Source: Trichoplax adhaerens
Taxonomy: Eukaryota; Animalia; Placozoa
Reading direction: 5' to 3'
NCBI RefSeq assembly: GCF_000150275.1
Contig: NW_002060992.1
Span: 11,655-39,175, forward strand
Length of the DNA: 27,521 nt
Shown one piece after another: positions 13,093-27,514 of this stretch. The position numbers and the translations under genes were made by a program. Position 1 is the stretch's first letter. Every line of letters starts with the position of its first letter. A model generated the notes under the pieces. It worked only from the letters and a program-made list of their open reading frames with translations, was not told where the DNA came from and searched no databases.

Positions 13093-13527
13093 TGTCACAA
13101 CCCTCACTTGTGGCAAAGGAAAGTAAAGAACTCTAGTGTAGTTACTTAAAACTTGGGCTATTTCTCCCAGTACTTTCAGTTTCTATGAGAGAAGTATTTG
13201 AGAGCTCGCTTTCTCGGCTGATCTCCACAGACAACTGACTAATTATTACACTATTCTTCACGATATGAGTCTTGCCGTTTCTTGAGCAATTACTTTCTTT
13301 ATTCTGCAAACACACGCGCTTAAGTAGGTTTCTACAGTGAATCCAGATAGAGAAGACCTGGACCCCCGCGAAAAATAATAACAAAAAGATAATAAAAGGA
13401 AATAAAAAATGAAACACTAAAAATCGGATATATACGCCGCGCGAGCGCAAAGAAATATATATATCGTTTCGACTCTGAAATTTTCTATATATATTTATGC
13501 AATAATGTATCGCGATTATCTTTTTGT
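13093..13527. mobile_element. Foreign insertion starting TGTCAC within exon 3 of paralogue 1 (possible LTR element; far end hidden in gap)
   Basis: Protein homology to paralogues 3/4 stops abruptly at 'tgtcacaaccc' and weakly resumes after the N gap. TGT is a typical LTR start. No TSD or PBS can be verified. Confidence 0.5.
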
Positions 13528-13988
13528 NNNNNNNNNNNNNNNNNNNNNNNNNNNNNNNNNNNNNNNNNNNNNNNNNNNNNNNNNNNNNNNNNNNNNNNNN
13601 NNNNNNNNNNNNNNNNNNNNNNNNNNNNNNNNNNNNNNNNNNNNNNNNNNNNNNNNNNNNNNNNNNNNNNNNNNNNNNNNNNNNNNNNNNNNNNNNNNNN
13701 NNNNNNNNNNNNNNNNNNNNNNNNNNNNNNNNNNNNNNNNNNNNNNNNNNNNNNNNNNNNNNNNNNNNNNNNNNNNNNNNNNNNNNNNNNNNNNNNNNNN
13801 NNNNNNNNNNNNNNNNNNNNNNNNNNNNNNNNNNNNNNNNNNNNNNNNNNNNNNNNNNNNNNNNNNNNNNNNNNNNNNNNNNNNNNNNNNNNNNNNNNNN
13901 NNNNNNNNNNNNNNNNNNNNNNNNNNNNNNNNNNNNNNNNNNNNNNNNNNNNNNNNNNNNNNNNNNNNNNNNNNNNNNNNNNNNNNNN
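13528..13988. other. Assembly gap (461 N)
   Basis: Run of n characters. Confidence 1.
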
Positions 13989-16207
13989 CTGGTAGTAATA
14001 TTTGTCCTCAATCTTTGTTGGATATGTATCTAATCAGCAGTTATGACTATTTCAAATGAAGATGTAAAGATCTTTGAAAGAGTGCTTTGATGCTGGCTTA
14101 GTTAGGTCTCAGATTCCGTCTTTTAAATTTTTACTAGTAGTCCTAATGATCTACATCGATATCGAACTAAAAATATATGATTTTTGAGTTAGATCTAATA
14201 GGCTTCATGATCTTTCTGTTAGGGTTTGATACGCTACATCAGTAAGCCCCAAGTGTTAAATTATTTTATTTCCTAACAAAAGCTACAATCAAATATGATA
14301 ACTACAATAACTAATAATATGCTGTAGATCTTACAAACATTGTAACTACCAAGGTTCAACTACCAAGCGAACCATTATGATACGAGATTAAGATCTGTTG
14401 AGAATTGCAGCTAGTCAGTTTAACTGCCAAACTAACCAATCGATCGTAAGACTTTTTTATTCTTTATTTTTAGCTATTATCGAACGGAGTGATTGGAATA
14501 ATCTCATATCAAAAAAATGTTGCCGAATTGGTTAGTATATCGCTGCTAACAATTTTTTTTAAAATCGGACTAAAAATTCTTTTTAACTATAGCTTGTAGA
14601 GTTTAGCTCTAGTAATGCTTCTCTCTCTCTCAGTGTGTCTCTACTTTGGTGTGTTATGTGAGTTATAGATTGCGCTTTAGTAATACCTCACATTTATATA
14701 ATATTAAAGAGTAAACGTACTAAAGTAAGATGTTATACCATAGTTAATGGAATAACTGAACGTTGTATGTTCTCATATTTTTATCGCAGCACTTAGTAGT
14801 TACATTTGAGTATATTAAGAAATCATGTGATCGTAAATTATCATAAAGTTAATGCTCCACTTGTTAATGGAATAGGATGCCTGGTACAAGGAAATAGCTA
14901 CCATTACATCAGGAGTTTGTATCACTTCCATTCTATTTGTTTTACAAACCCTGACATATATTAACAACAATAAGAAAGATCTTCTGTGGAAAGACAATCA
15001 ATTTGCTATCCTTTATCTTCTCTACACTGCCATTGCTATTATTGGATTGATTGTAGCATTAATTGGAGCAAAAGCATCGCGTTATCCTAGTGATATTTTT
15101 AATCATTCTATAAGATACTCGCCTAGAAGTGATTCTAACAATATTTGCATGCTAGCTAGTGCATTGCTCGCCGGTGGTATTGGGATATCAAGTTTAGGCC
15201 TACTAAACCAGGAAATTTGGGGTTTCTCAACTCTATTTATTGCTGTTACTATATGTTAAAAACTGAATAGAAGTAATTCAGCAGTTGTAGTCTCGACTAA
15301 TATGTTGCTATTTACTCGTATTTGCTATTGATTAGACTTTTACTACTGCAACGATTGGACTTGATAAACTTTATGTGGATAGACAAATCTTGGTCAGCAC
15401 AGCTTAAATGAACTATAGGATATTGAATATCGTTGTTCAACTATATAACAATTGATTATCATAAATTCTAATCCTTTTGGAACTGTTTCAAATAGGATCG
15501 GCCATATTTTGCCTTAAATTTTTGCAACTCTGTACACCATAGGCTTGATACTTTTTACGTATTTGGTTCAACCTTATTCCTATACCAATCTTCATTTGGC
15601 AAGCTTGATAATTCCTGCAATTGTCATCGCATCACATATATTTTCCATGGTTTGATTGCTTATTTTAGTACTAAATCAGCTGTACTTGCGGTACGTAGTC
15701 TAGAAAATGAAATATCAGAAGTAAAAGCTTAAATTAATGAGAGTCGGACGTATCGAAAGCTGGTTGACCTTCACTCCTCTTCAACTAGAAATAGCGAAAT
15801 GTACTTAAATTCTATACATTGCAATGATCATTTTTGCGAAATCAAAATTGTGATTTTTCGGAAGATTGTGGATTCGTCATGATCACAGTAAATTACCAGA
15901 GTTAATTTAGTAGAGGAATAGAGTTTATTGGAATTAGTGCAAAGGAAAAACCGTATGAGATTACAGCGTGTATAACGACGTGACTAGTCGAATAGCTATA
16001 GTAATGTAGCATAGGTAAAGCGTGCAAGCTTACCGTGTAACTAGCAGAACTAACTAACGAGATAGGTGAAAGAAGATAGCTTTTATAATGTATAAAGCAC
16101 AGCAGGAGGAAATCATAAATGACTAATAAGAATATGTTACTTCTATGTTAAGACAGGGCTACGATATAATTCAGCTAGATTCAAAGCGATTTCCACAGAG
16201 TATTTTG

Positions 16208-17389: not shown

Positions 17390-18092
17390 CCGTAAAATCT
17401 GCTCGTTTTCTGTTTTTTTTTTATCGGACGCACTATCCTATGGCTCCATTTTTCATTTCTATATCATCTACTACAGTTGCCTTAATTGCTGTTGGAATCA
17501 TCTCTATCTACATTGCTAACAAGGAATTTCAGCGAATCCATTCGAGTGATAATAATTATATTCTCTTTCAAACTCCTTTCAGTAGGGTTACTGTACTGTA
17601 TCTTGGGTGATGATATTTATAAGTCTTACCCTTTCTGGAATATCTACTGCAATATATTTCATACATTGGCCTTTTTACCATCTCGTCGTAGCTAATTTTC
17701 ATGCAGCTATGGTAAATAAAAGATGATAAACATTTTTTAACAGTGTTGGAAATTAACAGTTTTTAAATTTATGTTTAATCAAATTTCATTGTGTTATAAA
17801 TTGCTACTTAAAGTCATTATTTACTGTATTTTAAATATTCAGCTCTTTGCTACTGGAATTCTTAGTATGGTTGCCCATAAAAAGCAAGCTGCTAGATTAG
17901 TAAGCCTAACTACATTATAATCTATCCCTTTTAAAGTAATATCGTGTTATTTCACTATTTTAGCACTAACGGCCAATTCATAAAATTTAGAACGCGTGGC
18001 TAAAGACTTTTACTACTTTTACTAACGGAATAGGTATCGCTTTTACGTTTGCTACCGTTCAACTCCTTGCCCGCTATGCAACCCAAATGTAT
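17390..18092 (+). pseudogene. Paralogue 2, truncated and frameshifted pseudogene of the same membrane protein family
   Basis: Partial E3 ~17390-17711 (SARFL...ISIYIANKEFQRIHSSDNNYILFQTPF, frameshift near 17590-17605, then WVMIFISLTLSG...HLVVANFHAAM|gtaaat). E4 17843-17899 (LFATGILSMVAHKKQAARL|gtaagc). E5 from 17991 (NAWLKTFTTFTNGIG...VQLLARYATQ), with homology lost at 18093. No recognisable E1, E2, E6 or E7. Confidence 0.85.
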
Positions 18093-20522: not shown

Positions 20523-22385
20523 ACTCTTACACTTGCTACAACTTTGCTAAAAGTCAACGATTTTAAGACAACATCTATAGCTCAGGTATTTTCCATATTG
20601 CCTACATCAATTCTATGATTCTTTGAAAGTGTTTACATATTCCGTAAACCTTCTAATCATGTTTGATTTTATTAGATTTAAGCCAAATAACTTAATCTCT
20701 ATTACGTTATCGTGTAGGCTTCTGGTCTTACTGCTATAGCTGTGATTCTTTCTGCTACGTCGCCGATAATACTAGCCCGATTAGTATTGACCTTTTTCAC
20801 AAGCAACATTACGGATCAGTTGGCATTTAGAGTAGCCGCTGCGTTCGGCACTACTGGCATTGTTGTCGCAACAGTTATCTCTTTCTATATAGCTGTTAAA
20901 CAAGCTCGTCGTGTTCATTCTAGCGATAAGGAATATTCGATTCTTCAAACTTCATTCAATAAAAAAGCACTTATCTGCATAATGATAATAATCGGCCTGT
21001 TCATTTTTGGACTATCCGTTCCTTCACTTTTTGAAAATTGGGAACTATTTCATGTAGTCACAACCAACTTTCATGCTGCTATGGTGAGTTAAGCTTATGA
21101 TTTTATTAGTCGATCATTTTCGTTTTCAAACTAGTTATTTTCTTGCTTTTTCAGCAGTCTAAATAGCCTAAATTGCATCGTTAGCAGTTATAGTAGAATT
21201 CATATCATTTGCCTTAACCAATATAAAGGTTCTATGCGTTATTTTATACGCGTATGAAATTGTAGCTATTCAGTACCGGAATTCTTGGTCTTATTTCTCA
21301 TAAAAAGCAATCTGTCGATCTAGTAAGCATATATTTACTGTTATCCAAAATCGTTATGACATAATAGCCTACTTCATTGCTATTTTAGCATTACTGATTT
21401 ATTCTTTAATTAGAATATCTGGACTAGAACACTCGCTGACTTTACTACCGGAATTAGTGTTGCATCTACTATTTCTATAGTCCAACTTCTTGTCAGTTAT
21501 GCCAGCCAATCGAATTATACAAAGTGGCAAATAAGACCAGATTTTACAATTTTAATTCTTTGCCTAGCTCTATTTAACTTCATTGGATTCATGCTATCCT
21601 TTACTGCTAGCGCGGCTACGGATGACATCTTGCATAAAGTGCCACAGCCTTCAAAATCATCGAATACTGATACTGTTAATGTCGGTATGTTAGTCTCCGC
21701 AGTACTAGCAGGCGCAGTTGGCATCTTTAATATGGCTATTATGAATTATCCTACTTATGGATTTCCGGCTTTAGTCGTTTCTACCATGGTAGGTCGCTAG
21801 TATTAAAATGATAACTATAATCGATAATTTAACACGGAAGGACAGTATAATAAATTGATTACTTTAATTAATTCTGTATTAGCTTATCTGTAGCCTACCA
21901 AACTGGCTTTTAATGCTGTAAATGCAGGCTTATATAACGTCTAGACGCGGAACTGATATACAAACTACTAATAACGAGCTATTGGTAAGTCGAAATTACT
22001 TATAAATAGCGCTATTAGTACAGTATAGTTCGTCGGCAACGTGACGGATTGTAGGACTACTATCGATTAAATGACTAGAATAGATAAAATAAATTGTCTT
22101 ACTGGATGCTATTCTACTGTTGGAATATAGAGATTTCCATACCATATTTTCTACGTTTTCAATAGCTTTGGTAGCGTATGGGCAATTGGCATGACTATTT
22201 ATGCATTCGTAGCTGATAAGCCGTCACAAACTAGCCTTCTCGTCGTCATTCCTGCCTTTATTTACCCTTTTACTACTATCGCTATACTCAGTTTACTACC
22301 AGTTGCTTATTTTAGTGTTCGAGCAGCTTTCTGTAATAAAAAAGACACATGTAATGAAGACGATGCAAGCACTATCATTGCATAA
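20523..22385 (+). CDS. Paralogue 3: multipass membrane protein (putative triple MS4A/CD20-like), exons 2-7 intact, first exon unresolved
   Basis: GT-AG phase-0 exons forming one open frame: 20523-20585, 20718-21083, 21266-21322, 21414-21788, 21928-21984, 22131-22385 (stop TAA). Exon sizes 63/366/57/375/57/255; the first five match paralogue 4 (63/366/57/372/57). Mostly hydrophobic helices. Confidence 0.88.
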
Positions 22386-25604: not shown

Positions 25605-27514
25605 ATGTATAATCCACGTAAATTGAGTATCATTGTCTATGTTGGAGCCGTAGCTATGCTTTTTGGTGGTCTATTTACTTATATTTCCAACCAAGTTATG
25701 ATGCGGAGTTGTGAAAATATATTTATGATAGATCTTGGATTGATGGGACTTCTTGTAAGTCGAATTTTACTTTAGTTTGTTAAGATTATTTTTATCTTTA
25801 CGGAATGTAATATAAAAATAGCATAATAGTTGCAGCCGAAATGGAAGAATCGACTTACGTAATATCGGCTACTTTTCTAATTTATTTTTCTGAGTAGTCG
25901 AATAAACTTCTTAAGAGTACTATCTCCTTACGTAACCAAAATAACTTTTAGTAACTAGCTTGGATTATTATAACTTATCTATAGGCTCTTACACTTGCTA
26001 CAGCTTTGCTAAAAGTAAACGATCTAGCTACAACTTCAACAACTCAGGTACGGTAATTTATTTCGATATCGCTTTCGATTAAATCTTTAATTTCTTAACA
26101 ACAAATTTTTCACCCTATTTTATATTATATTCGATCTTAATCGATTAAAACTCCAATAATTATTTTAAAATTAACGTTAATCGTCTAGGCTTCCGGTCTT
26201 ACTGCTCTAGCTGTCATTATATCTGCTGCATCGCCCGCAATATTGGCCAGATTAGTCATAGCCTTTTTTTCAAGCGCCGTTAATTCTTCGTTAGGATTTT
26301 TTGTACCAGTATCAATCGCTATCGCGGGCTTTGTTTCCGTAGCAGCTATTTCTATCTATGTGGCTGTTAAGCAAAATCGTCGTATCTATTCTGACGATAA
26401 TGAATATTCGCTAGTTCAAACTCCATTCAATAAAGCGGTACTTTTCTGGGCGATGATAGTAACTAGTCTAGCTATTTTTGGGCTATCTGTTGCTATATTT
26501 ATGGAACGGTGGTATCTATATCACGTTGTCACGGCTAATTTCCATGCTATTATGGTAAGTTTTATCTTGATAAGTGGATAATTTCAGTTTCTTGCCAGCT
26601 TGTTTCTTGTATTTTCTCCAATTTAAAATAATTACAAGTTATCAGCCAAAGTAGTGTAAAAACTTACATCGCTTACACAAACTAATAAAAGCTGTCTTTG
26701 ACATTTTATGTTTCAATTTTAGCTTTTCGCTACTGGAATTCTAGGCCTCATTGCTCACAAAAAACAAGTTGTTGATTTGGTGAGCGTAACTTTACTAGCG
26801 TCGAAAGAACATTATCATGTATTTTATCGCCGTTTTAATAAATAGTAGTGATTTATTCCTAATTAAGAACTTGCTGTCATTGGAAGATTATTACGATACA
26901 CTTTATGTCTGTTTTAGTAATATGAATGTTTTATTTTGTAATTAGGGTGTCTGGACTAAAACTTTTACTAACTTTACTGCTGGAATCAGTGCTGCATCGA
27001 CTATTGCTATGGTTCAAACTCTCGTCCGCTATGCTAACCAACCGGGAGATACGAAATGGGAACGATTCGATTTTACAATTTTAACACTTTGCCAAACTCT
27101 ATTTACCTTCATTGGATTGATCCTATCCTCCGTTGCGATCGTAGCTACCGATAACGTCCTAAATAAAGCGCCAAAACTTACTAAATCGTCAGATATTGAT
27201 ACTATGAATGTCGGTATGTTGGTCTCCGCATCAGTTGCAGGAGCTGTTGCAATCTTTAATATGGCAATTATGAATTATCCTGTTTACGGATTTCCACCTG
27301 TAGTTGTAGCTATCATGGTCAGTTATTAACATTTATAACAATCACAGATCGATTATTTTATATCAATAATAGAAGGTGTAATGAATCGATTCTTTTAACT
27401 ATTTCCATATTTACTTAATTATAACCTACTAAATTAGCTTAAATGTCACANATATAGGTTATTGTAACAGCTAAACACGGAATTGATATCCAAACTACAG
27501 ATAACGGGATAGCG
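25605..27514 (+). CDS. Paralogue 4: multipass membrane protein (putative triple MS4A/CD20-like), exons 1-6; last exon beyond window
   Basis: Phase-0 GT-AG exons: 25605-25754 (MYNPRKLSIIVYVGAVAMLFGG...LMGLL), 25985-26047, 26189-26554, 26723-26779 (LFATGILGLIAHKKQVVDL), 26946-27317, 27458-27514 (VIVTAKHGIDIQTTDNGIA|gtaagc). Continuous ORF, homologous exon-for-exon to paralogue 3. Confidence 0.92.

Follow-up and report, generated by a model that had tools for sequence, protein, structure and literature searches.

The MS4A proteins, which include CD20, the IgE receptor beta chain and the olfactory MS4A receptors, are of considerable medical and physiological importance. They act as oligomers or as subunits of receptor complexes, and it is not settled in which oligomeric form they work or how they arose in evolution. 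Each consists of a four-helix up-down unit with both of its ends in the cytoplasm, and we count sarcospan as a further member of the same family (PF04103). Here, we describe a gene of the placozoan Trichoplax adhaerens, TRIADDRAFT_62449, whose predicted product strings three four-helix units together on one polypeptide. The gene lies at positions 25605-27514, on the plus strand, of the stretch of DNA that we analysed (hereafter the window; 27,521 nt, positions 11655-39175 of contig NW_002060992.1, C1365). The window has a G+C content of ~30% and belongs to an assembly of 105.6 Mb in 1414 contigs. We consider that the gene probably encodes a single-chain trimer of very diverged CD20-like tetraspans, generated by internal triplication or head-to-tail fusion.

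Among the closest described counterparts are the tandem MS4A polypeptides of chicken, opossum and platypus, which comprise 2-6 units each and were read by their authors as support for an oligomeric function (Zuccolo et al. 2010, PMC2826416). According to the same survey of 2010, MS4A genes are absent from invertebrates (PMC2826416). Units of the tandem vertebrate proteins are plainly recognisable by PSI-BLAST, whereas those of the placozoan protein are far diverged and number exactly three. Compared with CD20/MS4A proteins in general, which carry a single unit per chain, the Trichoplax protein has very short outer loops, and neither an immunoreceptor tyrosine-based activation motif (ITAM) nor long cytoplasmic tails were seen in it. 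Its gene product is deposited only as an uncharacterised protein, and the literature that we searched makes no mention of the gene identifiers of the family or of MS4A in Trichoplax.

Gene structure and three-unit layout

The locus comprises the 5′-most six of the seven exons of a genuine placozoan gene, TRIADDRAFT_62449, and is the last of four tandem copies in the window, all of which lie on the plus strand. Its six exons (150/63/366/57/372/57 nt; Table 1) are stop-free in translation, the introns begin with GT and end with AG, and every exon boundary is in phase 0. An in-frame TAG precedes the initiating ATG (25605) by five codons. Exon for exon, the six translations reproduce residues 1-355 of the deposited protein (P0006), contiguously and in the same order. 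A single N occurs at window position 27451, directly before exon 6. Further Ns begin directly 3′ of the exon-6 donor, which is where the P0006 model runs out. We place the seventh exon of the gene, encoding helices 3-4 of the third unit, outside the window, within the assembly gap just past its end, because a 98.2% identical copy on contig C1400 (L002) shows its last exon there (L002:976-1215, minus strand).

The full-length orthologue in Trichoplax sp. H2 (TrispH2_011665, P0017) has 439 residues and 12 hydrophobic helices. Adding a 255-nt last exon to the six exons of the window (150 + 63 + 366 + 57 + 372 + 57 + 255 = 1320 nt) gives exactly its 439 residues and a stop codon. Exons were searched one by one, and work on whole proteins used deposited sequences (P0006, P0017, P0021, P0019 and P0007). 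An initial annotation, made from the sequence of the window, had proposed this phase-0 exon pattern, a last exon borrowed from a paralogue, and a single chain of ~440 residues and ~12 helices. The open frames, the GT-AG introns and the deposited model agree with the first of these proposals, and the length and helices of P0017 with the third. The borrowed exon is that of the upstream paralogue TRIADDRAFT_62448 (paralogue B; 22131-22385), and the last exon measures 255 nt in all six delimited copies (B, L005, L006, the Logan contigs L016 and L019 and, by length, the H2 protein).

Twelve helices are indicated by hydropathy and by the secondary structure of both AlphaFold models (P0017 and P0021). 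Loops on the same side as the N-terminus carry 15 lysines and arginines, against 5 on the opposite side; we therefore assign both termini and the two long polar stretches to the cytoplasm. The units correspond to helices 1-4, 5-8 and 9-12, and the polar joints between them are encoded midway along the 366- and 372-nt exons. Both joints thus lie inside continuous open exons, and the fusion of the units is therefore independent of any splicing model. For the same reason, we rejected the possibility that separate genes had been mis-joined.

The three-unit layout is repeated at the level of the exons. Helix 2 of every unit is interrupted by a phase-0 intron, after which a small exon (63, 57 and 57 nt, respectively) encodes the remainder of the helix and a short cytoplasmic loop. 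Hydropathy autocorrelation has its top two peaks at lags of 145 and 288-298 residues in both proteins tested, and the lag of ~220 expected of a 6+6 arrangement is weaker than those at 145 and 290. The repeat is visible in architecture only, namely in the hydropathy lags of 145 and twice 145 and in the exon plan. The initial annotation had described the long exons as holding about four hydrophobic segments around a central polar linker. The polar stretch is real, but each long exon encodes 3.5 helices, and the stretch is the joint between two four-helix units. Likewise, the recurrence of a small exon holds with respect to size, phase, position and the combination of a half-helix with a polar tail, but the three small exons have no detectable sequence similarity to one another.

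The outer loops are only 6-12 residues long, without a conserved cysteine pair or a large cysteine-rich second loop. Exon 4 is the best-conserved piece of the gene, with 6 of its 19 positions invariant in the family. Two polar residues within helices are also invariant, R92 and the glutamine of a VQT motif in helix 7, as are W250 and F255, in and next to the outer loop of unit 2. To judge from their conservation, these four residues are candidates for a binding or packing site. The first unit joint (window 26366-26431, residues ~131-152) carries a tyrosine motif of the form acidic-x-Y-x-x-L/I/V in the target, in paralogue B and in P0021. The motif has F at its last position in L009 and is absent from L005 and L006. 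It could serve as a sorting or docking signal.

Links to CD20/MS4A genes and folds

A six-frame search of the genome with PF04103, for which the cut-off is 27.9 bits, identified three other genes, each of which aligns with profile positions 1-40 through its first coding exon. These exons score 18.7-22 bits, and their best Pfam row is CD20. Two of the genes (L011 and L013/L015) reside on contig C1409, and one (L012/L021) on contig C1408. In all three, the first exon stops midway through helix 2 (PF04103 position ~40) and is followed by a 57-nt phase-0 exon (Table 1), after which, in the C1409 pair, comes an exon with helices 3-4. The same plan, a phase-0 intron within helix 2 and then a small exon, is present three times in TRIADDRAFT_62449, with exons of 63, 57 and 57 nt. 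Further, the 57-nt exon of the CD20-like genes aligns without gaps with exon 4. Unlike the target, these genes encode single units, and their first exons score 19-22 bits on PF04103, on which the 12-helix family has no score; similarity between the two is undetectable outside the 57-nt exon.

The correspondence between the 57-nt exons was recovered from both directions. When the two 19-residue peptides from C1409 were slid along four family proteins, exon 4 ranked top of ~400 windows at an offset of zero in all four (z 3.1-5.2). Conversely, the three CD20-like loci were scanned on both strands with the exon-4 peptides of eight paralogues, covering all open windows of 19 codons (1600, 1750 and 4540 windows). 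The true 57-nt exon came first at each locus (z 4.3-4.5), with the runner-up close in two. A helix-2-end motif, consisting of small residues with glycine, a basic cluster and a final Leu or Met, is found in unit 2 and in neither of the other units. The initial annotation had quoted three 19-residue exon-4 peptides in support of an MS4A link, the third of which comes from a copy (14474-15250) whose exon-5 donor reads AT. The initial annotation had also proposed a 57-nt exon at this point in human MS4A2, but a literature search for a 57-bp exon in MS4A genes returned nothing useful.

Structural models provide a second line of comparison. The AlphaFold model of P0017 has a mean predicted local distance difference test (pLDDT) score of 50, and only residues ~150-280, corresponding to unit 2, are usable. 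That of P0021 (pLDDT 45; predicted template modelling score, pTM, 0.35) was not used for fold searches. Compared with 48,161 PDB representatives, unit 2 (region 145-290 of the P0017 model) matches best with four chains, including the IgE receptor beta chain. We take the last two of these chains to be sarcospan, as the sole four-pass member of the complex concerned. For unit 3 (residues 295-438 of the ESM Atlas model of P0017, pTM 0.79), the best match is an MS4A4A-like cluster, with a template modelling (TM) score of 0.80 over 144 aligned residues, and the next row has a TM score of 0.70.

Searching Foldseek with the whole AlphaFold model of P0017 (m78477c472b92) yielded no row at E ≤ 0.001. 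The best rows were to cytochrome ba3 oxidase subunit I (E 0.018, TM 0.34), a protein with 12-13 helices in a pseudo-threefold arrangement. This match is probably meaningless. A cluster of 828-residue nematode hypothetical proteins aligns with the Atlas model of P0017 over 413 residues (TM 0.70 by query), and concatenated units of a similar kind may, on the evidence of these models, also exist in nematodes.

Two other structural classes were tried and rejected. A major facilitator superfamily (MFS) or other 6+6 transporter, a fold that the initial annotation had named as evidence against its own reading, did not emerge from profile or structure comparisons. No transporter family matched in Pfam, Foldseek gave TM scores of only 0.16-0.24 (from a low-confidence model, such that this test is not strong), and the ~220-residue lag is the weaker one. 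A tetraspanin (PF00335) was rejected on the lack of a Pfam match and on outer loops of 6-12 residues. Overall, Pfam searches with the exons and the full-length proteins returned sub-threshold noise only (ERMP1-TM, TMEM128 and Cyclin_C).

Tandem copies, exon sizes and taxonomic spread

The tandem array is in birth-and-death turnover (Table 1). Paralogue B has a 63-nt exon (20523-20585) that matches exon 2 of the target, and its exon-1 equivalent runs into a TGA after 20 codons; its product may thus be without helix 1. The copy at 14474-15250 is probably truncated, and an H2 model (P0001) ends at the same point, the end of exon 5. A run of Ns (13524-13985) breaks the upstream part of this copy. 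The remaining copy in the window is degenerate.

Throughout the genome, there are eight full copies of exon 5 and four fragments, on contigs C1365 and C1400, with exon 3 found additionally on C1304. Profiles of exons 3 and 5 match these three contigs only. At identities of 30-60%, exon sizes are conserved among eight paralogues and in two contigs from another sample. Five paralogues, and also Logan contig L016, have an exon 3 of 366 nt, and exons 4 and 6 measure 57 nt in every copy in which they could be delimited. The two Logan contigs (sample SRR30664517) are only 30-50% identical and have nonetheless kept their exon sizes. Such conservation of exon size is far in excess of chance.

The C1400 copy L002 (C1400:690540-693911) is 98.2% identical to the target (L001) in exons and introns alike. 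More broadly, C1365 (45 kb) mirrors part of C1400, with nucleotide identities, introns included, of 98.2% (L001/L002), 94.8% (L007/L008) and 93.6-95.6% (L010/L009). The spacing of the copies is unequal between the two contigs, and paralogue B has no counterpart on C1400. C1365 is thus either a haplotype that has diverged or the product of a segmental duplication. Compared with the window copy, the C1400 copy has a net -2 frameshift in its exon 3 (L002:2496-2626, minus strand), around which the deposited model TRIADDRAFT_64272 (P0005, 348 aa) skips ~90 residues. This frameshift reflects either a pseudogene or an assembly error.

The family appears to be confined to placozoans, as far as sequence searches have found it. 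Run in full with HMMER against 1.84 billion proteins, the exon-5 profile returned 14 proteins, all at E ≤ 1e-10 and none weaker, and all named members among them are from Trichoplax. A word search with the same profile returned only four short fragments, of which the one that is named comes from Trichoplax sp. H2. Word searches with P0017 and with the family profile recovered family members only, adding none.

Table 1. Coordinates of TRIADDRAFT_62449, its tandem copies and the small exons of the CD20-like genes. Positions are those of the window, except where a locus is given.
Feature	Position	Strand	Description
Exon 1	25605..25754	+	150 nt; N-terminus, helix 1 and first half of helix 2, unit 1; ATG start, GTAAG donor; P0006 residues 1-50
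Exon 2	25985..26047	+	63 nt, phase 0-0; second half of helix 2 and short cytoplasmic loop, unit 1
Exon 3	26189..26554	+	366 nt; helices 3-4 of unit 1, 22-residue cytoplasmic joint, helix 1 and half of helix 2, unit 2
Exon 4	26723..26779	+	57 nt, phase 0-0; end of helix 2, unit 2; best-conserved piece
Exon 5	26946..27317	+	372 nt; helices 3-4 of unit 2, 19-residue cytoplasmic joint, helix 1 and half of helix 2, unit 3
Exon 6	27458..27514	+	57 nt, phase 0-0; end of helix 2, unit 3
Paralogue B (TRIADDRAFT_62448)	20523..22385	+	Exons 63/366/57/375/57/255; exon-1 equivalent 20020-20082 hits stop
Third copy	14474..15250	+	Exon 4 14474-14530, exon 5 14876-15250; AT replaces GT donor after exon 5
Fourth copy, degenerate	17449..18086	+	Exon 3 frameshifted; exon 5 reduced to ~30 codons
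57-nt exon, CD20-like gene	L011:1803-1859		Open, phase 0
57-nt exon, CD20-like gene	L015:1319-1375		Open, phase 0
57-nt exon, CD20-like gene	L021:5017-5073	-	Open, phase 0

Competing origins and what a single-chain trimer would mean

Several results weigh against a descent of the three units from a CD20-like tetraspan. At E ≤ 10, PF04103 is matched neither by exons 1, 3 and 5 of the target or the exons of its paralogues nor by the full-length proteins P0017, P0008, P0007, P0019 and P0005; on this point, the Pfam CD20 check set out in the initial annotation was negative. Nor does the six-frame PF04103 search touch any locus of the target family. In the sliding scan, exons 2 and 6 have no in-register likeness to the 57-nt exon of the CD20-like genes, and comparison of the first and third exons of those genes with the family profile (hhalign) was not significant. 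A sequence search of solved structures (PDB) found no match. Units 1 and 3 fall below a pLDDT of 50 in the AlphaFold model of P0017. The fold scores are within the range of generic helix bundles, and the modelled support covers units 2 and 3, with none for unit 1. In favour of the link, the nearest clusters by language-model features are those of CD20 and MLC1, at 0.81-0.82, but scores below 0.9 are leads only. MLC1 (PF27925; 0.80-0.81) is a vertebrate astrocyte protein with 8 helices rather than 12, and the MLC1 and CD20 families occur together in one Atlas cluster. A literature search on MLC1 and CD20 yielded nothing useful.

An internal repeat is similarly elusive in sequence comparisons. 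Exons 3 and 5 have no significant similarity (BLASTP E 1.2; hhalign probability 0.16%). Among units cut from the family alignment, the best pair in hhalign is that of units 2 and 3, whose in-register alignment spans 86 columns at E 0.12, and unit 1 matches neither unit 2 nor unit 3. In two alignments (A3 and A5), MAFFT aligned exon-3 or last-exon rows of the most diverged paralogues with the exon-5 region, which could be a weak trace of internal similarity or simply an artefact of depth. The enlarged alignment A5 was discarded after MAFFT had laid three last-exon rows over the exon-5 region. The triplicated tetraspan gene of the initial annotation is thus borne out by four-helix periodicity and a tripled exon plan, but not by any significant threefold repeat in profile-profile comparison. 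Its proposed link to CD20/MS4A fares in the same way, with the exon plan, the in-register exon 4 and the best folds of units 2 and 3 in its favour, but without a PF04103 match.

One alternative is a placozoan-specific 12-helix protein of independent origin, perhaps a novel carrier or channel, whose MS4A likeness is generic and whose 57-nt exon is a coincidence of helix-end composition. We regard such an origin as unlikely. The exon plan that occurs three times in the target also occurs in every one of the three genes that match the CD20 profile, and every scan, whichever its direction, put exon 4 on top in exact register. Further, the MS4A4A-like cluster tops the Atlas rows for unit 3 by 0.1 TM, whereas transporter chains reach only 0.16-0.24, and no transporter family is matched in Pfam. 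Derivation of the three units from another tetraspan superfamily, whether tetraspanin, claudin/PMP22 or MARVEL, is highly improbable. None of these families is matched in Pfam at E ≤ 10, the 6-12-residue outer loops leave no place for a large cysteine-rich second loop, and the top PDB and Atlas rows are CD20-family proteins. Both the exon plan and the exon-4 motif likewise match the CD20-like genes.

The array does contain decaying copies, and the near-identical copy L002 carries its net -2 frameshift in exon 3, which raises the question of whether the target is itself a dead gene without a 12-helix product, or three small neighbours mis-joined by annotation. Against this, the joints lie within continuous open exons that need no splicing model, all six exons of the target are open, models made independently for two strains agree in structure, and exon sizes have been kept in another sample at 30-50% identity. 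We therefore consider an artefact or a dead gene extremely improbable.

A single chain of three very diverged CD20-like units remains, in our assessment, the probable explanation. We infer the shared ancestry of all three units with CD20, their pseudo-trimeric packing and any function of the chain. The most likely history is one in which a four-helix CD20-like tetraspan gene was triplicated internally, or fused head to tail, and then diverged strongly. In the gene, the closing exon of one unit is joined in frame to the opening exon of the following unit. The resulting chain would be a trimer of fixed stoichiometry whose three units have diverged, a proposal that we base on MS4A proteins, which function in oligomeric form or as subunits within receptor complexes. 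By analogy with those proteins, it might serve at the membrane surface as a sensor or an organiser of partners instead of transporting solutes. A birth-and-death array would fit a fast-evolving role that faces the environment.

We can also speculate on a broader scenario, in which CD20/MS4A tetraspans with a mid-helix-2 intron and a 57-nt exon predate the placozoan split. Placozoans would then have welded three of them into pseudo-trimers, which, in an animal that lacks neurons, would work as chemosensors at the surface or as receptors that conduct ions. Taken as a whole, this scenario is distinctly unlikely. If the hard-wired three units, the shared exon plan and the conserved helix-2-end exon have been read correctly here, they would place the superfamily near the base of the animals. 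The placozoan protein would then represent a natural concatemer for structural and functional work, and a model of fixed stoichiometry for the debated MS4A oligomer.

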